DNA from: Zygnema circumcarinatum SAG 698-1b
Lineage: Eukaryota; Plantae; Zygnematophyceae
Length of the DNA: 64,000 nt
Direction of reading: 5' to 3'
Assembly: GCA_037447605.1 (NCBI GenBank)
Contig: CM074804.1
Coordinates: forward strand, 5,743,909 to 5,807,908
The first letter of the stretch is position 1, and each line of letters begins with the position of its first letter. The position numbers were made by a program, and so were the translations under genes. The notes beneath the pieces are model-generated. The model had not been told where the DNA came from and searched no databases. It saw nothing but the letters and a program-made list of their open reading frames with translations. This document shows positions 9,182 to 59,500 of this stretch, in pieces.

Positions 9182-12100
9182 ATGAGTGCCGAGCGGATCT
9201 CCCCTCGGGGAGTTTTTCATATATCTTTTAATCAAGATAATACGTAAGCTTTTCGTGTTCGTTTTTTTTTTTACTTGCTACATGAAATACAACGGTTGCC
9301 TCTTTTCTTGATGTTATTCTGAAAGGACGAAGGCTAAATATCGTGTAAGGTAGAAGGAAGAGCAAAGGAAAAAAGACAAGGAGTTGTCGGTGGCTTATCA
9401 ACGGATCTCGTCTACTTAGCTGCAGCGTCTGAATCGAGATATCATTTTGTCTGTTTATTCATATCAATTTGTCGATTTGGTTTTAGCGCAGTCAGTGTTT
9501 CACCATTGCACAGCGATTATAGGTTTGGACAGCATTTCTATCTGGCATCGTGATACATGGCAGGGTCATGCACATCCGATCGTCACTAGATTGCATGTAA
9601 GATGTTGGAGATCCAGAACTATGCAACTTGATTAGTTGCTGGAGGATTTCAAAACCATATGCACGAAAGGGCGCAAGCACGATCCTTAAACCGGGAAGCA
9701 TGACCTAATTATTCATGAACAATGTTTAAGTGATCAAAATCTCCAAAGTACTGTTCAAGGGCATGAGAAGGTGTCCTGTAGAACCGCAGTTTCGAGCAAA
9801 ATTTTAAGGAATTTTGATGTAGGCTTTCCTTTTGTGAAGCATTCTGGTCTTGCATGATGACATTGCATAGCAAACAGTCGCTTCTCATACCATGAACAAA
9901 TGGTAATGTGTTCTGAGTTTAGGCCATGGAGGCATTAGATCAGTTAGCTTGTTCTATGTGTATATGTGCCATGTTTGCTCCTTGCTTAATTGCAACAAGT
10001 ATTTTGACGCTTTGCTCACTCTACAGCTGCATTTCCGTGGCCACTCGCGCTGGCTTCAAGATTTTCAATTGTGACACCTGTACATGCGTGTATGACTACT
10101 GTGAGTGTCTGCTTAACTTTTGCAGCTCCATGCGTGTTCGCTGTATTAGACCATCAACATAGGATGGAGCCATAGACACTAAACCACTAAACTAATACTG
10201 GCGCTAACCTCGCGGGGCATCGTTTATGGCCTCATTTTCTTGTGATGTTGTGCAGCGGGCGGAGCAATTCGCATTGTGGAAATGCTTTTCTGTACGAGCC
10301 TGGTTGCACTTGTGGGAGCTGGCGAGCAGGTCTTATTCCAGCCATCTTTGTTTTCCTTAAACCTCGGCCTTTTCTCGCTTGTTTTTGTCACCATCTGATC
10401 TCCCCAACTCCGCTGTATTCTACGAGGACTTTATCTCTGAGACTCATAGTTACTTTATTCCATCTTTTATCCACCGCCTGTTGTTCTTTCAACTTTGAAA
10501 CAAATAGTCAGAGATAGTAGTGTAGCGTATATTTAGAGATGAGCTTACAATTGAATTTGCTTCCTGCGGCACAAGTTAAAGGTGCTGCATTGCTGGCCCG
10601 TGCAGCCGTCCTTGTCCCCCCGACGCGTACAGCTGCTGAATACAAACGCGACGGCAGACACTCCGCCTGCTGAGCTCAGCTTCGTCAGCTCCATCCTTGC
10701 TGTTCGCCTCAATCGGAAACGGTATGCCAGCACTTCACAATTTGAACAATCGCTAATGGAGGCTGGACGAACGTATGACTCTATTCAAGACTAAAGTTGC
10801 ACATGACCAAATGTATGCATAAATGACGAAGTACATTCTCTGGTTTTGAATGGTTGTGCCTTCAATTTGATTTTTCTCCACATTCTGTATACTTCCTATC
10901 TCATTCCAGTGGTAGTTGGTGACTTCGTTATGTCAGGCTTATAGTTATTCTTGACAAGAAGGCCTACATCCATGACCTTGCTGAGCTCATGCTTTTGGAC
11001 ACACTGGACACCTGCCACAATCCTAGAGGTAAACCCTGTGATTATACGCTGGAATGGCCATTGGTTTTGGATAGGAAGGTTGTGCCCTGAATTTACAATT
11101 TGAGGGTGTTGCAGCCTAAAAGTGAAGCACGCGTCTAGTCATCTATCTGAATGGCGGAATGTCCTTCTGACGTTCAGTTCTGGTTGTTGTCAAGGGGCAC
11201 CTGCAGTGAAGCATGCATGTCCATGGCTTCTACACAGGCGGTCTAAAACGTGGTGTTTGCAGAGGGGGGCAGGAATATGTGCACTCTCCCAGAACCCTCA
11301 GAACTGCTTTTTGGCCCTTCCGGGAAGTTCGGTATCGGGGGCTGTGCTCATCTATGATGCTTTGAACCTCCGCACGCTGTGCCAGGTATCACGAAAGTTA
11401 AACGCTGGAATGAATGGAAGGCCACGAAGAAAGGAAGGGATGCTGCCATGAACTTGGCTTCTTTGATCACTGAATTGGGGATGAATGGTTTTCAGAAAGG
11501 TATATGATGGCAGAAATGCGTTGCAATAAAGATTCTTGCTGCATTAGAAATGTGACGGTGAGCTTTCGGCGTGATGTCAGATTCAAGCCCATGTGGCTCC
11601 TATCACTACTTTGGCATTCTCTCCAGACGGTTCGATGCTCGCCTCTGCATCCGAAAGGGGAACTGTGGTTCGAGTGTACGCTATCCCTCAGGCCGCCAAG
11701 GTGGGAGCTTGAAGGCCATTGGAAAACCGGATGTATTTTTCCAGACTTAGGTTTATATTATAATTGTTTGGAAAAGCAATGAATACACGGCAGTCAATGG
11801 CAGTGAAAGAATTACACCACGACTGCGCTTCCGCCTGCTGTTGAACCCGTAGGATGTGGACTGATGATGCAGGTTTACACGTTCCGGCGTGGAACATACC
11901 CGGCCACCATTTATTCCCTTGCCTTCTCCCCTTCCCCATCTTCGCTGCTCGCCGTCACCAGCGATAGTGGGACTGTGCATGTGTTCCGGCTCACCACATT
12001 CGCGAGGAAAAGGCAAGCTTACACATCCTTCAGATAATGAGTTTAGGTCTTGACAAAGCTGTTCGTTTTCGTCGTACATTGTCTGCTCGAAGACGGATGG

Positions 12101-12867: not shown

Positions 12868-13584
12868 CATTAGACTTTTGCAGCTTTCGCAGGCTGCAAA
12901 AGTCAAGGCCTTCTGTAGCATTGTGTGTGATTGACTGCGTGACGATTTTTTTTTTCGGGCTCTGCAATTCCGTCAAATTCTAGTTTGGTTCATGAGTTTG
13001 AGGGAAGGGCATACGCATGCAAGCCTGTGAACGAGTTGCATTGTGGTTGGCGGAAGATTTACAAGACCAACCAGTATCATATTGAGCGCGGCCTTGATCA
13101 AACGATTTGTCAAAATCTATTTGGACTAAAGGAGTTTCTCCATGTGTTGAGGGTTTGGAATTGCGCTGATGTGTCAAAATGCACATGCATTCCCTTCTTA
13201 TGCGTTTTGATTGTGTTTCGTATAATTTGGCTTTCATGCCAAACCGATGCCACGTGAGACTGGTGATGTTGAGTTTTTTTGCATGTTGTGTTTGAATTGG
13301 CCATGTGCTCCTCCTCGAATGTACGTTTCAAATTTCTTAACATTTGCTGCCCCCATTCAACAAAGTAAAAAAAAGTTCAAATTTCCCAACCTGTTTGGTG
13401 TTACACGGTACCGGTATTCCCAAATCGGAAACTTTATCACGCTCGTCGAAAATTGTTCAAGCCTGAATGCCGCCTTCAGCGATGGCGCTCGTCCAATCCG
13501 TCACCTCTGCGACAGGACATGTTTCAGCTTGCCTACGCCCGCGCCCACTACTCCAGTGAGTCCAGCCAGTTTTGCGGCAGTTTG

Positions 13585-47200: not shown

Positions 47201-49226
47201 CCGCCGCCTTGGACTGTGCGCCCAGCAGGGAGCCGGTTATGGCCACCACCTCGGACTCGAACTGCACAACGCTTGGAAATAAGCCGGGATGGATGGGGTT
47301 TGTGTGCGAAAACCTACGAAAGCGAAAGGAAATTGAAAAAAAGCGCAGGGAGGGGGGGGGGGGAGATTAGTTTCTCGCAGGAGATGGCTGTTCCGGGTAC
47401 TTGAACACAAACCAGGCATGAAATCAGGGTCATCAAGGTACATGCTGGATTGTCACATATAGACGAAAATTGGTAACCGTGTAAAATGAATACAGTGAAG
47501 TCAAATCACGCCGAAAGGGCCACGCTCGCTGCTTCCAAACGAGATTGAATGTTGTCGAGCACTGAATAGGACCTTACACAATATCGGGTATCGCAAGAGG
47601 AAACCACTTACAGCCGGTACGCGGTAGTCACTCTCTCCACATGTTGCTCAAAATCTCTCCCACCCATGTACCTGCACACCCCTCTCCCTCAGCTACTTGT
47701 TCCAGCAGCATCCATAGACGACCGCTCCACCCTCACTCTTAGCTCGCATCACATCAATTCATAGAGGCTATCTCCCCATCTAAACCAAGCAGATTCTAGA
47801 TGAGAAAAGGCAGGAACGAATTTGTAAATGCAACCTCTCACTGACAGTAGCTTACACAGTGCCGGAACATTTTCCCTGCCACTGCTTGTCCTTCGCATGG
47901 ATGTCCTTGAGAAGGCCAAGCACGCCGTCCTTGAGACCGACTTTTGGAAGGTGGCTTAGTCGCTCAGACTGTGGGCGGCCCACAGAAGCTCTGAGTTGAT
48001 CGATTGTCTGAACCAAGCAGTTATAAAAGGAGCGAGCAGCTTTCAGTGGATTATTGATGGGCGGCATCCCGATGTTTGAATCTAATGCTCGAAATCTCTG
48101 GTTCAATTAACCAGCGGCAAAGAAAATACCTCCTTCACATTGTTCTGTATTGTGAACTCCATAGCAGAAAAAAAGACGCATAATGGGATAAAGGTAAAAA
48201 GCTTGCTTCTAAATATTAGGACAGAATGTATCACGACGACCACGATAAAGTCACCGTAGACGAAATAGGAATTGACAAACCTCAAGAAAAATGGTAAATT
48301 GACCAATGACTGACATGTATCTCTTCAACCATGACATCGCCCTGTTCCAAGTTTCTAGTGTGATCCACTTTCACACTGCCCCAAAAAAAATCGCCAGAAG
48401 TATTGACTCTACCTTTTTTTTTTCCTTTTGAATATAAGAATCGACTCGAGGAAGAAACCTGCGCATGATGCGACAGCGTTCGTTCAGGCGAGTCTACGCT
48501 ACCGTATTAATATGAACAACACATTTCAGTTATTTATGACCCAAAAAGGAAAGAAAGGCTGCTTGCAATCCTCAAATAAACATTTTTCACACGAGGGTCA
48601 CACAATCATTGCATTCCTAATCATCTTTTTCCGTTCATTTTCAGCGCTAAATGTAGTCGGAATGCAAGATAACGTTAAGGGTAATCGAATTACTTTAATA
48701 ATTTGAAAAGGAGGGCGGAAATTAATCCCTTCAAACCTGCAATAATGAGAATGAAACGAATTCATACTCAATTAGAGCACAAAAAACTGGCGCAGTAATT
48801 GCGTCAAGGAATAAACTACAGAAAAAACAGCCTATGCTTGATTTATTGATGGAACCTTGCCATAAAAACTGTTCGGTATAGCTGTTTAACCCAAAAATTG
48901 AGTCTCAGATTAAAAGAAATAAAAAGAAGTAATATAAAACAAAGAATTTTTTTTTTGTAATGCCAGGCATTGTCCTGCACGCAGCGGCGACAGCGACATG
49001 TGAATGACGCAAGGCGGCAGCGGCAGCACTTGCCGTGCTTCTCCACGCTGGCCGCGGCGTCCCCCGCGAGGCGCAGGAGGCTCGCGAGCAGCAGCGCGGC
49101 GAGGGCGGAGGCGAGCGCGAGCTGCAGCGGCTCCAGCGCGGCGAGCTGCGCGTTAGCGGCGCCGCGAGCGGCCTGCAGCCGGTGCAGGCCCTCGCGCGCC
49201 CACTCCCCGGACGCCAGCGCCGCCAT
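44222..49226 (-). CDS. DPL1: Sphingosine-1-phosphate (long-chain base phosphate) lyase
   Basis: Spliced motifs: [100 protein letters not shown] (PLP lysine), W.GGLY.SP..AGSRPG, last exon [25 protein letters not shown]. Start at 49226 (or 49232). Confidence 0.95.
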
Positions 49227-49509
49227 GGACAACCCTCCGCCTGCCCTGCCCTGCCCTGCCCGGCAATGCCTCGCCCCTGCTCCTGCTCCTGCTCCTGCCT
49301 GCGCTTCTCCCTCCCTCCCTCTTCAGCATCCGCCCGCCCGGCCGGCCGCCCGCCCGCCCAGTCAGTCGGTCGGTCCGCCATCGTCACGCGCTCGCTCGAA
49401 AGCGAAGGGCCGCAATGCGTCACGTCACATACCGTCATGGTACAGTACGTCAGCGAAGCGCTGTCCGTACAAAGGAAGGCCCTGCGAAGGTGCGCACACC
49501 GCCGAAGGA

Positions 49510-49613
49510 GCCACGTGGCAGGACGGCGCCATGTGACAGGATGGTGCCACGTAGGCAGGACGGCGCCATGTGGCAGGACGGTGCCACGTGGCAGGACTGT
49601 GCCACATGGCAGG
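49510..49613. promoter_or_regulatory. Tandem 18-bp repeat (~6 units) built on the palindromic G-box GCCACGTGGC, ~290 bp upstream of DPL1
   Basis: Units at 49510, 49528, 49546, 49565, 49583 and 49601; consensus gccaYgtggcaggacggY. Confidence 0.7.
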
Positions 49614-49662
49614 CTTGCGAATGCGGGGTCATTCGGCCTGATCGCTCGCTCACAGCCGCTGA

Positions 49663-49790
49663 CCTGACTGAGTGACTGACTGAGTGACTGACTGAGTGAC
49701 TGACTGACTGACCGACTGACTGTCTGACTGGCTGGCTGACGGATGGACGGATGGACGGACGGATGGACGGACGGACGGACGGACGGACTG
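49663..49790. repeat. Compound tetranucleotide microsatellite (CTGA/GTGA)n-(CGGA/TGGA)n
   Basis: Directly visible. Confidence 0.9.
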
Positions 49791-50210
49791 CCCTCAACTC
49801 CAACGCCCGCCCGCCCGGCCGCCCACTGCCAGCTTTCGCGCGACCCATACAAAATGAAGCGAAGTTTTGAGTCCGAATATCTTTACATGTGACTTGTGCC
49901 ATGAATGCTTCTCAGCGCCGCGTCTGAGTGCAGGCTGTTGCGTGCTATGGAACGGATCAATAATGATCATGTGTGGAGAAACTACTTTCTGCTATAGGGC
50001 CACCTTCCTTGTGCGCTTTCTGGTACGACCTCCTGTTACGAACAAGTGCCTAAACGTTGACTAAACTTAAGCTGCTATTATTACTCATAACATGAATATA
50101 ACTGCCCAACTCCAGTGCGCGGGAATAGAATTTGACTACTTTACAGACGATCCATCCAGTCCCCTCCTGCAACAAGGACTACGAGACCAGCCCTCAATAG
50201 CCGGCCAACC

Positions 50211-52809
50211 TCAGCCTGGTCTATAATAGTCCATTTTGTCAAGCGGCAAGTTCACAATGTCCGTATCCACCTGCACAAACCACGCGCTAGTTTGAATTAG
50301 GCTCAAAAAGCCTCCAAGTTCCGCAAACTCCTCACCACTGCAGAAGATACAACACACAAGCGATACGCCGATCCAACCAACCAGCCTGCCAGCCCTTCCT
50401 CCGTTAGAACAGGCAGCATGTTCAGCTGCTTACCTCCTCCTGCGGAACGAACACAAAGGGCGCCATTCCGCGACTGTGTGAGACAGCCGGCACGTCCGGA
50501 TTGTGGCTCTCATTATCGTCCCAACCCTCCACAGCACACAGAACATCGTCTGCATCTCCAGGGATCTCTGACTCGTTGATACCACTCGTGACCAAGGAAA
50601 GCAAGTCCAGGCGGTTGTTTGCGCCTTCACAGGTTCCTCGCAGTCTGCACAGTCTCACAGCTATCCATGTCACTTCTGCTCATCCACCGCTGTCTGCTTC
50701 CTGTCTGCAGCGAGATAGTGAGACAGAATACCTGGCACGAATTCGCAGAACAGTGGGACGCAACCCTGAATAAAGCACAGCAGCCTCCACCTGCCAAACT
50801 CCCCTGTACCCCACATTAGTTGCAATTCTTCCACACATTTGTTTGAACGCTTAAGTGCATCCGCGCAAGTGCTCACACAAAATGCTGGTTGCTCGAGGAC
50901 CCTGTCTCTCAGTGGAAGTAGCACCACACAACGTGTGCAGAAACGGTGTGTCCTCACCAGACTGTCTGTGAGGGTGTAGCGCCCCACCAGGACTCCATCC
51001 GCCTTTGCAGCGGACGCTCGACCAGACATGGATTTTGCCACTTCCCTCAAAAACTGTGGAGAAACCTGTTTAGTACATAGCAGTGGCTGGACCAGTCTGT
51101 CAGTAACTGTGTGTCTAGGCCAGCATTCGCACCTCCAAAATTCTTTGCCAGCACTACCCGAATACAATCGCGCTCACTTAAAAGAAGCAGAGTTTTCTTT
51201 AACTACAACAAAGAGCATTGATTCTGAAGCCATGACTAACCTTGTAGTATACTTTGCCATTGGGTAGAAAGCGCAAGTATCGAAAATAACACACCTGCAG
51301 GAAACGAACTATCGCCGTTCTCATACTGAATACTTTTCATCACTCTGCAGTGATCGTCTCCTTCTGCATTCTCCCCTCAGTTATCCAGTCTAAAAGCAGT
51401 CTTCCTAAATCATTCTTCTGGTCTGTGATCGACAACTACTATCGAACCATCAAACGTGTTAAATTCAATCGTCTCCAAGGCGTTGACAACAACAAGCAAC
51501 CTCGACCATAAAAGGGCATCTCACGCATCCTAACCATGTGCACGGGATTTGTCGTGGTCCACTCCACAATGCCACAGCGAATGTAGGTGTTGCGGCTCAC
51601 GTAGATACCTGTCAAAGTCACCCTCCAGCTTCTTAAGTCCCAGCTCAGGGTGTGATCAGAGAAAGTCCAAACCTGCCCAATATGCAGAGGTCGCCCACCT
51701 TCTGTGAGCAACCGGGGACGGCAGACCCACATGCGCCGCCATGAGCAGCCGTAACTACGCTTCAGCAGAGCTTCCTGCTCCTCTTCACTGCCAGCCTGGA
51801 AGGTGTTCCCACCCAGACTACCATTTTCTGTCAAAACTCTGCTTCATCAAAAGCACTACCAGCAAGCAGGTTGACTGGGCGGTTCTTATACCGGCCAGAC
51901 GCTGAGGCAGGCACTCTGCCATAGGCTTGGAGTCCTTGCCATGTACCGCCATTTCCGGCAAACGCAGGCAGCACGACCGAGCGTTGCAGGGCGCATATGC
52001 TGGAAAACCTGCAGAGGGATCAAAGGAACCTTCAATCGAGTTTAGGACGACTGCTACTCGAACTGCTGTGCTCCCCTTTCTTTCCTGCATTCTTCTCTAA
52101 TCACTTTCTCTAGAATACTCTGTGCGGTAGCGATAGCCGTTTACAACATAGTCCACCAGTTGCCTGGCTTTCCCTTAAACTCTATTCACGGCTACTCTCC
52201 GTCGATTTATCAATCCCTAAGAGAAATGTCAAGTGGATAAAGAGTGAACAATACACAGTGAAAGTGGACATAAATGAAATTCAGCTACTTTCACAATTCT
52301 GCAAAGGTCAGACCTGTAATTCGTTTACTGTAATGGCATATGTCAAACCATGCAGTGCAATATACACCCATGGCATAAATGACATTGCCTAATAGAGGAA
52401 TTCTTAAAGTGGGGAGTATTCTCATTTCAACAATCCACTGAAGTACGGAGATGCCCAACAAGACGTTTCTTAAACTGCATCATGAACGTGATACATGCCA
52501 CTTTGACCTCGGCCGGATTGAAAGGTATACCATGAGCAGAAGCTCATCAGGCAGCATGCGATGCAGAAGCGCAGTGTCCTCTATTGGCTGTCTGCTGGTA
52601 CTGCCAGGTGGTGCCACTGGGCGCACACGCATGCCGTAAAGACCTGCACAGGTGTGTTCGAATGTACTTAGAGTTCAAAACGTTATGGCTTCTCCTCTAT
52701 ACGCAGGATGCTAAGTGATGGGCTTACTCATCCATGGCCGGTCTAAAAACGTTGAATCCTGCATCGCCTGTCTCCGCCTGCTTGATTCCAGTGATGTGGT
52801 AGGGGCCAT
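50211..52809 (-). CDS. FBP7: F-box protein 7 (FBP7/SKIP32, FBXO9-like)
   Basis: Exons 52809-52728 ([27 protein letters not shown]) and 52643-52531 ([20 protein letters not shown]...LPDELL), then [74 protein letters not shown]...[14 protein letters not shown], and last exon [13 protein letters not shown] with stop at 50211-50213. Confidence 0.93.
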
Positions 52810-52965
52810 CGTCCTCTTTGCTCTGCCATGGAACAACGTTTTCCTGATGAGCGCACGAAGCCAAATCGATCTTGGTTTCTGCACAGTAGCTTCTGCCCCT
52901 TTGTTATCTTTATCTGCAAATTTTAGCTATGATTACAGGTACTGCTTCACTTACCTGTCAAGATA

Positions 52966-53722
52966 TTAAAATCGAAGGGTCAGCTGAGCCAATAAAAGTG
53001 CTAATTCGTCTTCTTGCTCCTTCTGCTCCCTCAGCACTTTCCAGATAACAAATAAGGCATAAAATGATAAAAGGGCAACAACCAACAAGACTGGGAAGGA
53101 TCTTCTGAAGAGGGAGGGGTTCGAGGGCTGAGAGGACATCTTGAAGGCATTTACATTCCTTACAAACGAAGTAACCAATCAAGCCAAGTAACTTCAAGTT
53201 GCCGAATTTAAGTTCCAAGGAGTGGTGAGGATTTTTTTTGTATCCGGAAGGGTAGTGTTGGCAATTCGAGAAAATCAATCGAAAGTTCTGCACGGCTACT
53301 TCTGGTTTCTCTTTGGTAAATGTAGCCATAGGTAGAGTACTTCGTTTCTCATTTACCCTCAAGTACATACGGTGGAGGACGGCAATACGACGCTTATTTA
53401 CTCTGCAGTTTTATTTGCTTCGACAGTCATGGGATGTCATCTTGTGAACCTTAATCATCTGGTTATGTTCGAGATTCAGTGTAGGCCGGCCAGTGTTTCC
53501 CGGTTCGGTTTCGGCCGGTTTACATCGTACAAACCCTTTTACTTTAGGGTCTGGACGGCATACCCTTGCGAGCTGAGACTGTGCAGAGTGCAGCAGGAGG
53601 AGCGCGCGGTGCACGACCCGGAGGCGGTGCGCAGCGTACGCAGAGGCGGGAGGGAGACGCTCGAGCCTCCGCAGCTCCTCGCGCAGCGCGGCCTCCACCT
53701 CCCCCGCCCCCGCCCCCTCCAT
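52966..53722 (-). CDS. 71-aa two-exon micro-ORF directly upstream of FBP7 (candidate conserved uORF or first cistron)
   Basis: Exon 53722-53564 (MEGAGAGEVEAALREELRRLERLPPASAYAAHRLRVVHRALLLLHSAQSQLAR) plus exon 53022-52966 (KEQEDELALLLAQLTLRF*), GT-AG, phase 0. High-GC codon usage in exon 1. Confidence 0.7.
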
Positions 53723-54242
53723 GCACCTCCCCGCCTCCTCCACTCCTCCCTCCCCTCTCTCCCGCAGCAAGCAGCAAGCAGCGCAATGCAGGGCCAGGGC
53801 AGGGCTCTAATGGCGGGCCTCTCTCGGCGCGGGGCCGTCACATGCACATGGAAACGACGGCCTGTGGAACTGTCGTAAAACAGTCGCATGTGACCAATCG
53901 GGAAAAGGAAGCAGCCCTAGAGCTGGGCCTGGCTCGGGCGTCGGCCAATCAAATCGCGCAAATGTGCACACGTGGCGAGTCCTGACTGGTTCGAGGACAG
54001 GCCAAAAATTAGCTCCAACCGTAGTGCAAAAGACGCCGCCCGGAGACGATCTATGCGCCATCCTGTTCAGCGTCGAGCGTTGTCCTCTCACCGCTCCATG
54101 CCACAATGTTGTGAATTGGTTTTGCGGAACTGCAGCTGACGTGAAAGGAGGCACAGGACGGGCGGTGGGGGCAGTGGGAGGGGAGTTTGGGCAGAGGTCG
54201 AGGGAAGGGGCGAGGATGCGCTGACCGCAGGAGAATGCAGCC

Positions 54243-56224
54243 ATGGCTTCCAGGCCCTCTCAGGAGGAGGAGGATGCGAGCATGCTGAAGCTGGGAGAAG
54301 GTGTGTCATCGCATGCATGGGAAGGAGGTCTCCTGCCGTTTGTTTCTGGCCGTGAAGAGTTGTAGGGATAGATGAAACCATGTCGGTGTTTGAGGTTGCC
54401 AGGCATTGCGGATGGGTCGTGTGGGGAAGATAGAGTGCACGATTTCCTCGTATCTGGCTACAATTTTCTCTTCTTATTCCTGTTTCGTGGATTCTGCGAA
54501 ATGTGGGCTCAGACTTTGAGAAGGCGAAATGTTTGATGAACTTCGAAGTCCTTCAGCTTTTGAAGCAGAAGCAGGAGATGAGCAAGGACACTGAAGTGCC
54601 AGAAAACCCGTAAGTGGAAGCTGCTGAGGCTAGAAGGCCAAGTATTCAACCCTGTGGTTGCTAGATTCCTCTAATTTCTCCTTGGTTCTCTAGAGTTTGC
54701 TCATATGCGACATCGTTGAACAGAACACGATGCGAAGTTAATGTGGGGCGGCAATTGAGCTGTATAAAAATGCATGTTGAGTTCTCCACGGTAAGCAGGG
54801 CGGACATTCAACGGCTTATCGGCCAGTAAGTGACCTTTTTGCGTCAATGTGCAGAGTTTTTGAGAAGTCGTTAGCATATGTCGAGCGCTTCAGTCGGTAC
54901 CAAAACCCCGAGGCTGTCACGCAAGTGCGCGAGTGAGTGCTTTTGTACCCACACGCAATATTCAAAACATGGTGCTTGCCCATAGCAGAGCATACTTTCT
55001 AGTTTTTCAGCCTGAGCTGGCTGAAAAAATCGGGAATCAACTAAGAAAGCGGCACATCGTTCAGCCTCTGGTAAGGACGGGCTGACACGCAAGATGAGGT
55101 GTAGGTTGTTTAATTATGTAGCATAGGCCACACTACCAGACGGAACTCTATGCTCGAACAGTAGTTTGTACATTTCTCTGTTTTGGCTTTTGGTGGAGTG
55201 AATTTTCGCGAATCAGTTAGCCTTGCTTCGGTATTGTTGCCTCTCAGCCTAGAGCTTGGTATCTTCACATGTTTTTCCCCTGGTTCAACATAGACCCGTT
55301 TAAAGTTCCTCTAGGTGTGCATCGTTCTGTGAACTACTTTCGTTTTTTCCCTTAATGGTGGTCCCTTGGTTGGGTTTCTTTGGCTTTGCAGACTTCTGGG
55401 AACAAGGTATAAGTTGAAGGAGTTCGAGGTATGATGCCAGCTGTTTGGTGATTTGGGCTACAACTGTGTCTGTTTAACCTCTCGATCTCTTATGATCTCA
55501 CAGTAAGATGCAGGCCCTTCTGCATGTCCGGCATGTGTATTGCAAGAGTAGGAAATGAATTCGGAAGAATAGTTGCTGTGTTCGGACTGTTTTTGCTTGT
55601 CAAGCTGGGGTAGAAGAAACCAAAATATCTTATGAACCAACTTGAGAAAACTCCCATTGTCAGTTTTCGTGTGTTTCTTCTTCAGGCATTTGATGAATTT
55701 TTTGTTACAATTGCTGCAGTCTCAGTCCCATCTTTCGTTTCTATTTTTATAACGAGTTGTTCAACGGTAACGGTTCTTCAGAACTACAGACATGGGGTGG
55801 TGCCTGCCGTGGCTCTAGGTCTGTGTGATCGGTAATCTCAACCCAGAGGGCCTTGAAGAAGTTAAGGCGCTTGTGCCGTCTCTCACGGTGAGTTGGACCA
55901 GTGCAGCAGATCCCACTTGAGAGCCTGTCTCATGGTCGTTTTACGATCATTTTCATTCTTTGAACTGGTTGTGAGCTCGACATTACCTATGTCGGACTTG
56001 CGGACCCGCGGACTCGGTCTGACAGGACATGCAAGTCTATCTAGAAAGAGCAGTAAGTCGGAAAATTTCAACCTCAGAACTCGCGGCATTTGTTTTTTTT
56101 CTTTTCTTTAATCCTTCTGGCGTGGGGGTTTGGCCTGGAGGTGCAGGTGGAGGGAAGAGATATTGATGATGAAAAAATCTACGAAATGCTCGCAGACATG
56201 GCCACCATAAAAAAGTTTGAGTAG
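54243..56224 (+). CDS. NRPB4: RNA polymerase II subunit 4 (RPB4)
   Basis: Spliced protein MASRPSQEEEDASMLKLGEDFEKAKCLMNFEV...VFEKSLAYVERFSRYQNPEAV..VRE.L...L.EFEVCVIGNLNPEGLEEVKALVPSL...DDEKI.EML.DM..IKKFE*. Stop at 56222-56224. Confidence 0.95.
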
Positions 56225-56553: not shown

Positions 56554-59500
56554 TTATGAGTGTGCAGCTGCCGGCCGCGGGTGCAGCGTCATGAGGAGGC
56601 CGTGGGTCATGGCGAGCGTTAGGGACGGCCGGAACTTGATGGGATGGCCCGGCACGAGCTTCAAGTGGAAGCACCGCAGAATGGCCGCGGCGGAGTATTT
56701 CATCTGCAGAACGAAAAATGACAGAGCATCAGAACATCCATATCTAATGCAGAAAGCAGCGGAGGCATGTCAGCAACACAAATCACATCAGGGCCTGCTT
56801 GCACAGGCGACTGACAACGAGATTGTAGAGTTAAACCCATTAAGTGGTCACATCAGGATCAGTGGCTTTATAGATTATGTCATTATGCGTTGTTTTGGCT
56901 ACCTGCTCTCTCGCTTTCCCTTTCCACCTACAGACTAACAACCTGCTAATGAAAAAACATGGCGAGACCCACGCCATTATAACGACAGCAGCTACAGCGC
57001 TTGGAAACAATTCATGACATAATTGTTAGGCAATTGTCGTTGAACAAACACCCTTAAAGAGAGATGCTGTCATTCTCCATGCCAGTATGGACATTCCAAA
57101 AACACTTCAGCTTAGCAAGAAATCCCGACTCGACACCTGGCGGGGTGACCCAAGTAGTGTTTGACACGTCCAGACTTTGTCAACATTTCTGGAGATGCGT
57201 CTCAAAGACTAGGCCGCTATTTTCTGTGTCGATTGTATTCAGACGAAGTAAGGTTCAACCTTTAAAATCAACGGCCTCATATCTATAATAGAAATATTAC
57301 TTCAGAGAATTATCGCACTCCCCAACAATAGTGCTAAGTGAGTGTAAGGGACTATCGTTCATGCGCTGAAGAGGAGTTACGACTTCGCTTCACTGGCCCA
57401 CGTTGGGTCCACAACTTTCTCATGACTAGATACATCTTCTTCTCTTTGCAGTCATGACTACTGTCCTTCTAGAATTTGCTGAGCCAATGCCCAAGCAGGT
57501 TACAAAGCAGAACAGGTCAGGTCATGTCCCCCACCTGCAGGTACGCCATCTCCCGGCCGAGGCAGAGCCGCGGTCCCGCGTTGAACACGGGAAACTTGAA
57601 GAGCGACTCCGGCTGAAAGTCGCCGTCCTTGAGCCACCTCTCAGGGTTGAATTCCAACGCGTCGGGCCCCCACACCCTCGCCATGCGGCCCACCGCAAGG
57701 ATCGAATACGACAAGCGCCATCCCTTGGGCACGAAGGTGCCGTCGGGGAGGGTGTCACTCTCGCGGGCAGTCCTGCATTCACCGGGGCTTGAAACTGGTG
57801 GTGAGAGAATTGGGCACAAACAAAAGTTGAGAACTCTAAGTAAATCTCTGCAAGACTTTAAGTGAAGATTATCTTCGCAAGAAGGCTATGTGTCAGGTGA
57901 ACGTTTCATTCCAGCATAGCCGCCCTGCCTCACATGATCAAAACACTAGAACATTCAAGGATCACTCTTTTCTGGAAACGCAGACAGAGCTTGCCTAGGC
58001 ATTGTATACTGTTCACTGCAATATGGGTTCATCAACGACTCGGAGTAAAATGACATGCTTTTGAAGGTACTAATGGAGTACATAAGAATACATACTCACG
58101 TGATCCAAAGTGCGTGTTCTTAAAGTATTTAAGCAGTCTCCCTTCCCACTGATCAAGAGTAGACAAGGATCTGTCTTGGGCTCACTTGATGTCTAATGGA
58201 ACCGGCGGGTAGAGGCGAAGAGATTCCGAGATTGCCGCGTGAAGATAATGCATGGATCGGAGCTCCTCAAACGTGAACGTTTCTTTGCTTCTCTCATCTA
58301 GCAATCACAAAGGCACAGGTCATTTATCGACGAACGGAGAAAAAACGACACACATGTCCGGAAAAGTCAATGTTTTGTCCCACCCATGTGCAAGTTCGAA
58401 ATTGACACCATCGACAGATTTCCATATGCAACGCTTGCCATTGTAAATGCACCATAAAAAATCGCCCTTATTTCTCACTGTGCGACGGAAACCATCAACA
58501 GCGCGCCAAGCCCTACCTGCATTGCGAGCGGAAATGACAGAGTTGATCTCTGCGAGAATGCTTTCTTCCACGCGGGGGTGCCTCGCCAGCAGCCAAAAGA
58601 AGCAGGTGAGGCCGAACGCGGAAGTATCCCGGCCGGCGAGGATGAAGTTTGTGCACACATCGCGGAGGAACGCGGGGGAGTATTTCTGCTCCCCCCCCTC
58701 CTGCCGGCCGGCCAAGATGAACCTGCACAGGGGAAAGGGCCGAGCTGCGTGTGAAAGGGGACTTTTTTGAGCTCGAAGACGAAGAGGGTACATTTTGTTT
58801 CTGGTGTGAGGGTGGAAGAAGCGTAAAAAGAGAGCGTTGTGAGTAAGCAGTAGTAGCGTTCATAGAGCAGATTTCACCTCGACAGAAGATCATGGCGCTG
58901 GTTGGGATTCGCTGAGTCCCCATCACAATCCTTCGTCTCTGCCAATTCCATTTGGCGCTTCTGGACGACCTCATCTGCAAAATCGTGAACTACCTGCAAG
59001 TTCACTCGTAATCAAGAGTAAGGAGGAGGAAGAGGACAGTACCGTCATAAACACGCATGAAGAGGGAACAACCATAAATTGGCAATTTCTGAAGGATAGG
59101 CATTTTGGATGAAAGTTGTTGAGAGACATATCTTTCGAGTGTTCCTGCCTCCAGTATTTGACCCTGAGCAACATCTCACCTTGATTGATTTAGCAAGTTC
59201 CGCTTCCCAACCGCAGTTTAGCAGTCGTAAGGTTTTCCAAAGAAATTTTGGAGCAAGGGCGCGAATGCAACTAGCCTGCTCCACCGAAAACCACGCAAAA
59301 GGAGAGCACCATTTTTGTCGTGCTTCAAGTTCAAGAGATTCCACTCTAGCGGGACAGTAGAGAAACCCAGCAAGTAGGAGCAAAAAGCGGCCAAAAACTC
59401 CCCACTCTGGACATTAAAAGGAATACAGGAACCGGTCACGCGATGGAACCACGAAACGTTTCAATGTCCCCAATCTGATTTTTGGCGGAAAACATGAAAA

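Follow-up and report, generated by a model that had tools for sequence, protein, structure and literature searches.

A conserved microprotein gene directly upstream of FBP7 in the alga Zygnema circumcarinatum and its possible expression from a dicistronic mRNA

How two open reading frames (ORFs) packed head-to-tail on one strand come to be expressed, and whether the smaller of them encodes a protein in its own right, is the question raised by a locus in the streptophyte alga Zygnema circumcarinatum SAG 698-1b. We analysed 64,000 nt of its genome (GenBank assembly GCA_037447605.1, contig CM074804.1, positions 5,743,909 to 5,807,908 of the forward strand; hereafter the window, numbered from its first letter), whose minus strand carries a two-exon ORF for a product of 71 amino acids (aa) directly ahead of FBP7, an F-box gene of the FBP7/FBXO9 type. 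The original prediction, made from the sequence without database searches, had the two ORFs sharing one mRNA, as a bicistronic or regulatory upstream-ORF system with a possible fusion isoform. Our comparisons indicate, with high confidence, that the 71-aa ORF is a genuine, anciently conserved protein gene and not a chance ORF, and they suggest that this microprotein gene is probably co-transcribed with FBP7 on a single mRNA. The explanation that we favour as a whole, with slightly less assurance than co-transcription by itself, is a conserved microprotein gene arranged head-to-tail with FBP7 and expressed from a dicistronic, spliced mRNA.

The microprotein ORF begins at an ATG at 53722. Exon 1 (53564..53722, minus strand; 159 nt, 53 codons) encodes helix 1, the LPP.S.YA.HR.RV motif and helix 2 of the predicted product, and ends in phase 0 at the donor AGG/GTATGC. 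A phase-0 intron of 541 nt (53023..53563, minus strand; GTATGC...GAGCAG) then leads through the acceptor GAGCAG/AAG into exon 2 (52955..53022, minus strand), whose 18 codons encode helix 3 (...ELALLLAQLTLRF) and whose TAA stop (52968-52966) is followed by 11 nt up to a consensus donor, CAG/GTAAGT, at 52955/52954. FBP7 itself (50211..52809, minus strand) comprises 10 coding exons (52809-52728, 52643-52531, 52008-51892, 51795-51699, 51608-51535, 51294-51241, 51065-50958, 50790-50732, 50644-50434 and 50270-50211) and has a 324-aa product; exons 8 and 9 of the model were refined against orthologues recovered by an exhaustive HMMER search with one FBP7 exon as query. Along its entire length the model shares 64% identity with Nelumbo F-box protein 7 (P0011; aa 24-324 in the family comparison), and Pfam detects F-box-like (E 1.2e-10) and FBO_C (E 2.8e-21) on individual exons, which places it in the FBP7/FBXO9/Hrt3 group. 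Because the FBP7 N-terminus aligns with homologues from the ATG at 52809, and has 23 residues before the RPW motif, compared with a median of 28 in 124 full-length homologues, the main ORF requires no upstream coding exon. All the coordinates originally proposed for the two-exon ORF, the donor, the acceptor beyond it and the FBP7 ATG were borne out on the minus strand.

Conservation of the small ORF was assessed by fetching FBP7 loci from other organisms and searching their flanks with the window peptide by tblastn. In Closterium sp. NIES-54 (contig L002), the peptide finds a match of 56% identity over 39 aa (E 5e-10) on the FBP7 strand, just upstream of FBP7. The Closterium gene has two exons like that of the window, with a phase-0 intron in the same linker: exon 1 (L002:9359-9553) ends in phase 0 and is 50% identical to window exon 1, and exon 2 ends ...ELEALFASLSL before a TAG at L002:9797, ahead of the FBP7 ATG at 10001. 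The DNA of Closterium sp. NIES-53 is nearly identical to that of NIES-54, and its annotation lists an 84-aa protein (P0207), recorded only on an NCBI genomic contig, directly upstream of the FBP7 coding sequence. Two conserved ORFs therefore lie on the same strand at short spacing in both algae, the microprotein stop and the FBP7 ATG being separated by 156 nt in the window and by 203 nt in Closterium. As a matter of annotation, the NIES-54 gene set contains a 456-aa DAGK_cat model (L002:1-9797, CASDOD010038592.1) that ends exactly on the microprotein stop codon, whereas NIES-53 has a separate microprotein gene, ~6.7 kb beyond the end of its DAGK gene; the NIES-54 model is probably a false gene fusion, and appears to attach the microprotein exons to an unrelated upstream gene.

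The microprotein also neighbours FBP7 in other lineages, in a different orientation. Three ENA metagenome contigs (L019-L021) carry a plus-strand FBP7 that stops at about L019:8930 and, on the minus strand, a two-exon microprotein homologue of 62 aa (in L019, exon 1 at 12138-12010, a 560-nt phase-0 intron and exon 2 at 11449-11390), recognised by tblastn at E 5e-7 with the Closterium peptide and E 3.5e-6 with the window peptide. On these contigs the genes run tail-to-tail, as a convergent pair with stops ~2.46 kb apart, and a donor (CAAG/GTAATG) stands 9 nt after the L019 microprotein stop. A second group (L006/L009) holds an exon-2-like segment (...DQLEILFANMCF followed by a stop) in a convergent position like that in L019, exon 1 falling past the contig end, and L006 likewise has a post-stop donor (GAGG/GTAAGA), 7 nt after the stop. 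Both contig groups are probably bryophyte, since the 62-aa product size fits a Streptophyta cluster and an AlphaFold-DB entry of 62 aa among the matches described below.

Pairwise identities between the microproteins are 48% (window and Closterium), 39% (window and L019) and 44% (Closterium and L019), and the conservation is spread over all three helices and not focused at the C-terminal end. A three-way alignment of these sequences, with database members judged through their Foldseek and ESM Atlas matches and not from their own sequences, defines a family core of 60-85 aa that carries LP..S.YA.HR.(R/K)V across helices 1-2 and closes, right at the stop, with the C-terminal helix EL..LF..L.(L/F). 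Sequence comparison finds the C-terminal motif in the window, Closterium, L019 and L006 alike. Gene structure is conserved as well, with the phase-0 intron in the helix 2-3 linker seen in the window, Closterium and L019, and a donor 7-11 nt past the stop in the window, L019 and L006, to which the L006 group contributes the donor; the Closterium gene has no splice donor after its stop.

AlphaFold2 predicts three helices for Closterium P0207 (predicted local distance difference test score 76.6, predicted template modelling score 0.60). A Foldseek search of AlphaFold-DB clusters with this model returned, as its nine best matches, uncharacterised proteins only 62-145 aa long with identities of 30-44%, and in each the alignment reaches the C-terminus of the match. 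The language-model features of the ESM Atlas retrieved Streptophyta clusters of 80 and 83 aa, and its shape comparison retrieved clusters of 83 aa (Streptophyta), 154 aa (Chlorophyta) and 62 aa (Streptophyta) at root-mean-square deviations of 1.2-1.7 Å; with window exon 1 alone, the 62-aa Streptophyta cluster is the best feature match. On these predicted structures, the microprotein is a member of an uncharacterised, Pfam-less three-helix family present in streptophytes and chlorophytes. These searches, together with the Closterium and L019 homologues, whose sequences match the motif LP..S.YA.HR.RV ... EL..LF..L., give substance to the resemblance to a short land-plant protein that had initially been proposed.

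Other searches were negative within their scope. Pfam has no match for the window peptide or for the Closterium peptide, and a separate Pfam search with long ORFs from the window also gave no match. The window peptide found nothing in a word-indexed protein database, which says little on land-plant relatives because the tool requires shared 5-mers, and a two-sequence exon-1 profile recovered solely the Closterium protein itself from the word-indexed proteins. A pattern built from the exon-1 alignment had no confirmed match in JGI metagenomes, the protein collection holds no exact entry for the 71-aa window product or the 62-aa L019 product, and an Rfam scan of the window from 50.0 to 54.7 kb, intron 1 included, matched no RNA family. 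Matches to PDB sequences and to Swiss-Prot AlphaFold models (NDUFA5, LTO1 and ninjurin) were weak, generic helical similarities and were rejected as non-specific. Elsewhere in the window, a segment on the minus strand at 12988-13107 weakly resembles the core of the microprotein (..NLPPTTMQLVHRL..; E 0.004-0.02 by tblastn), probably by chance.

The conservation of the product also bears on whether the ORF might instead be a classical conserved-peptide upstream ORF (CPuORF), in which a nascent peptide would stall ribosomes in cis and repress FBP7 without any function as a free protein. An ORF that precedes a regulatory gene and whose peptide is conserved across species would suit such an element, and CPuORFs share this placement ahead of the main ORF. 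CPuORFs (PMC3426882, PMC4330380), however, exert their effect in cis and do not occur as separate genes, whereas this peptide is not confined to the leader of a main ORF: homologues are free-standing in other plants and green algae, and L019-L021 carry it as a separate, convergent gene. The product, 71-84 aa in the two algae and 62-84 aa across the sampled loci, is predicted to fold as a three-helix bundle, and it is conserved along all three helices and not at the C-terminal end, where stalling would act. CPuORF peptides are usually shorter. Because the product is predicted to fold and is encoded as a free-standing gene elsewhere, we consider the regulatory uORF that had been proposed highly improbable. 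Ten papers retrieved for At5g21040 appear, from their titles and abstracts, to contain nothing on an upstream ORF.

Given a protein-coding microprotein gene, the spacer between it and FBP7 bears on how the two are transcribed. The string CAGGTAAGT occurs once in the window on both strands together, 11 nt past the microprotein stop, where 0.0012 occurrences would be expected per spacer length. Its predicted partner is the acceptor CTGTGCAG, an octamer identical to the acceptor of FBP7 exon 9; together they would delimit an inter-ORF intron of 76 nt (52879..52954, minus strand) and begin the next exon at 52878, 69 nt ahead of the FBP7 ATG. An alternative acceptor AG lies within this leader at 52823/52822, with 52878 the predicted choice. 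The leader (52810..52878, minus strand) contains one out-of-frame ATG (52829-52827, minus strand; U at -3), 20 nt ahead of the FBP7 ATG, from which a 28-codon ORF overlaps the FBP7 start; splicing to 52823/52822 would remove it. Post-stop donors in the window, L019 and L006 imply that exon 2 is internal in three lineages and that the transcript must continue past it, and in the window the sole item downstream is the start exon of FBP7, which favours a link between the two.

The composition of the region points the same way. Between the microprotein ATG and a divergent gene resembling Rpb4/RPC9 lies a GC-rich stretch (53723..54240; GC 0.56-0.71) that may act as a bidirectional promoter and 5′ untranslated region (UTR), and an island with GC of at least 0.62 spans 53451-54000, covering microprotein exon 1. 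The window contains 15 islands at this threshold (CpG observed/expected ~0.7-1.1, against a background of 51% GC), about one per 4 kb or per gene. The FBP7 ATG has no GC island, the local GC being 0.47. The short spacing, the post-stop donor and the absence of an FBP7 GC island together favour one spliced dicistronic mRNA. In the most likely course of events, both ORFs would be transcribed as one pre-mRNA from the GC-rich bidirectional promoter at ~53.75-54.2 kb, and two introns would be removed, 53563-53023 and the short one that starts past the microprotein stop. In the resulting dicistronic mRNA no more than ~80 nt would separate the two ORFs. Translation of the microprotein would start at the 5′-proximal AUG, in a suboptimal context (U at -3), whereas ribosomes passing over this first AUG would initiate FBP7 at 52809, where the context is strong (A at -3, G at +4). 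Such start contexts, weak for ORF 1 and strong for FBP7 in the window, would fit the leaky scanning described for green-algal bicistrons (PMC11892635).

Alternatively, the locus may consist of two independent, tightly packed or overlapping transcription units, which we regard as unlikely while giving it appreciable weight. The microprotein mRNA would then have its own 3′ UTR, with a 3′-UTR intron as in L019, and be polyadenylated in or just beyond the 5′ region of FBP7, and the FBP7 promoter would lie inside the 156-nt spacer. L019-L021 lend weight to this arrangement, for there the microprotein gene retains its post-stop donor while being detached from FBP7 and read from the other strand, and the NIES-53 annotation treats the microprotein and FBP7 as two separate genes. 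It would, however, have to accommodate spacers of 156 and 203 nt against distances of at least 1 kb to other neighbours (~1 kb to the next genes in the window and 2.6-6.7 kb in Closterium), the lack of a GC island at FBP7 in a window with about one per gene, and a head-to-tail order kept in two distant algae. The spacer leaves very little room for a separate promoter, in support of the original argument.

Several observations nonetheless weigh against a single dicistronic transcript. Because the two genes are convergent in L019, the post-stop donor there can belong only to a 3′-UTR intron, and the donor alone is no proof of a link to FBP7. Polyadenylation in streptophyte algae follows no clear motif (PMC1868727), so a site in the spacer may exist, which would suit two separate units. 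The out-of-frame AUG ahead of the FBP7 AUG would interfere with initiation unless the more 3′ acceptor at 52823/52822 is used, Closterium ORF 1 has a purine (G) at -3, and the Closterium spacer is a CT-rich repeat, which also suits a separate FBP7 promoter. CT-rich repeats can occur near plant start sites. Finally, one AUG in the window and none in Closterium lie between the two start codons, where 1.4-4.0 would be expected, and this depletion is not significant alone (shuffle P 0.04-0.22).

A further possibility concerned splicing of the shared transcript. If exon 2 were skipped, exon 1 (ending at 53564) could join 52878 in frame and without a stop, as originally proposed and as a reading of the DNA confirms, and an isoform of this kind would add 76 residues to the FBP7 N-terminus. 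We consider such a fusion very improbable. None of the 124 full-length FBP7 homologues has a microprotein-like N-terminal extension, the best acceptor in the Closterium spacer lies 17 nt ahead of the FBP7 ATG and so gives no in-frame route, and an open in-frame leader of 69 nt is expected by chance with a probability of ~0.1.

With a dicistronic mRNA as the favoured interpretation in the window, how old is the association between the two genes? Comparison of sequences across the sampled loci indicates that the linkage of the microprotein to FBP7 is old, though its head-to-tail form is found only in the two streptophyte algae. Neither the L019 and L006 groups nor Nelumbo preserves this order, and no microprotein homologue lies within 10 kb on either side of FBP7 in Nelumbo. 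A hornwort-like contig (L018) and L022 likewise gave no microprotein match, and L003, a Logan sequence with a distant FBP7-like gene and a 554-nt leader, has no microprotein ORF. The ancient microprotein/F-box module that had been proposed is thus upheld as an old linkage in more than one lineage, but not as a fixed unit, since the pair faces tail-to-tail in the contigs of probable bryophyte origin and is unlinked in Nelumbo. What is new here is an uncharacterised conserved microprotein with an unusually old linkage to FBP7 that shifts between tandem, convergent and unlinked across the sampled lineages.

One could suppose that the microprotein and FBP7 are functionally coupled, the microprotein acting for example as a stoichiometric partner, adaptor or regulator of an SCF-FBP7 ligase, and that the dicistron was ancestral to streptophytes. 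Such coupling would explain why the genes stayed neighbours after an inversion to the convergent order in the probably bryophyte lineages; we regard it as doubtful. The locus does single out an otherwise uncharacterised, widely conserved plant microprotein and suggests FBP7 as its candidate partner.

As a side observation on FBP7, a JGI contig (L008; 3300052650, Ga0496031_000352, 6497 nt) contains an AhpC-TSA_2 gene as a single 434-aa ORF and the first ~170 residues of FBP7 as a single ORF, unlike genomic contigs L006/L007, in which both genes are split by introns. L008 resembles a read-through or metatranscriptome contig, partly spliced, that joins FBP7 to its upstream neighbour.

Known systems offer a measure of how unusual the locus would be. 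CDC26-TTM3 is described, in the account of PMC11892635 citing Lorenzo-Orts et al. (2019), as a plant bicistronic transcript carried on one mRNA and deeply conserved, also in Chlamydomonas. The Zygnema locus resembles it in that a small protein ORF, conserved in its own right, takes the 5′ leader position ahead of a larger conserved gene to which it is biochemically unrelated, both on one strand and a short spacer apart, and in having an upstream ORF that encodes a real protein and not a regulatory peptide. It differs in that, whereas CDC26-TTM3 is by that account proven to be one mRNA, co-transcription with FBP7 is suggested by sequence and the upstream protein is uncharacterised. Against the deep conservation reported there, its tandem order was seen in only two streptophyte algae, with the genes convergent in the contigs of probable bryophyte origin and unlinked in Nelumbo. 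Apart from CDC26-TTM3, few nuclear dicistrons that yield two real proteins have been described in the plant lineage, and we know of no other that is well established.

Chlorophyte polycistronic nuclear loci, by comparison, have been defined by Iso-Seq and proteomics, and the systematic surveys of polycistrons covered chlorophytes (PMC7896298; PMC11892635). In the window, the FBP7 locus resembles them in a small ORF 1, short spacing, a weak Kozak context at ORF 1 with a strong one at ORF 2, and few AUGs before ORF 2 (a scarcity not significant alone), which would be consistent with leaky scanning. In contrast, it lies in a streptophyte alga, is known from sequence and synteny, and has a predicted intron between its ORFs. 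The supplementary tables of PMC11892635, in the part available, list no F-box partner, and a literature search turned up no report of nuclear polycistrons from streptophyte algae. If the locus is dicistronic, it would represent a second anciently linked microprotein/enzyme pair, this one in the algal relatives of land plants. The sampled arrangements, from tandem genes at ~150-200 nt in two algae through convergent genes in the probably bryophyte contigs to unlinked genes in an angiosperm, would form an evolutionary series that illustrates how such units dismantle.

Neighbouring features of the window complete the description of the locus. The divergent gene on the plus strand (54243-54613) starts its ORF at 54243, contains a second exon reading ...NFEVLQLLKQKQ... 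and gives a weak Pfam match to RNA_pol_Rpb4 (E 0.03); it probably encodes an RPC9/Rpb4-like subunit and has its GC island in common with the microprotein gene. Several of the GC islands in the window coincide with 5′ ends of genes and may serve as start-of-gene markers in the Zygnema genome. Farther upstream, cytochrome P450 exons on the minus strand at 57520-58800 include the heme-binding region FNAGPRLCLGREMAYLQ (Pfam p450, E 6e-14). Downstream of FBP7, minus-strand tandem repeats of ~21 nt at 49500-49800, each with a G-box-like core of the CACGTG or CACATG type, precede an ATG at 49226 and lead into (GTCA)n and (CCGT)n microsatellites; all lie within the GC-rich promoter region of the next gene.

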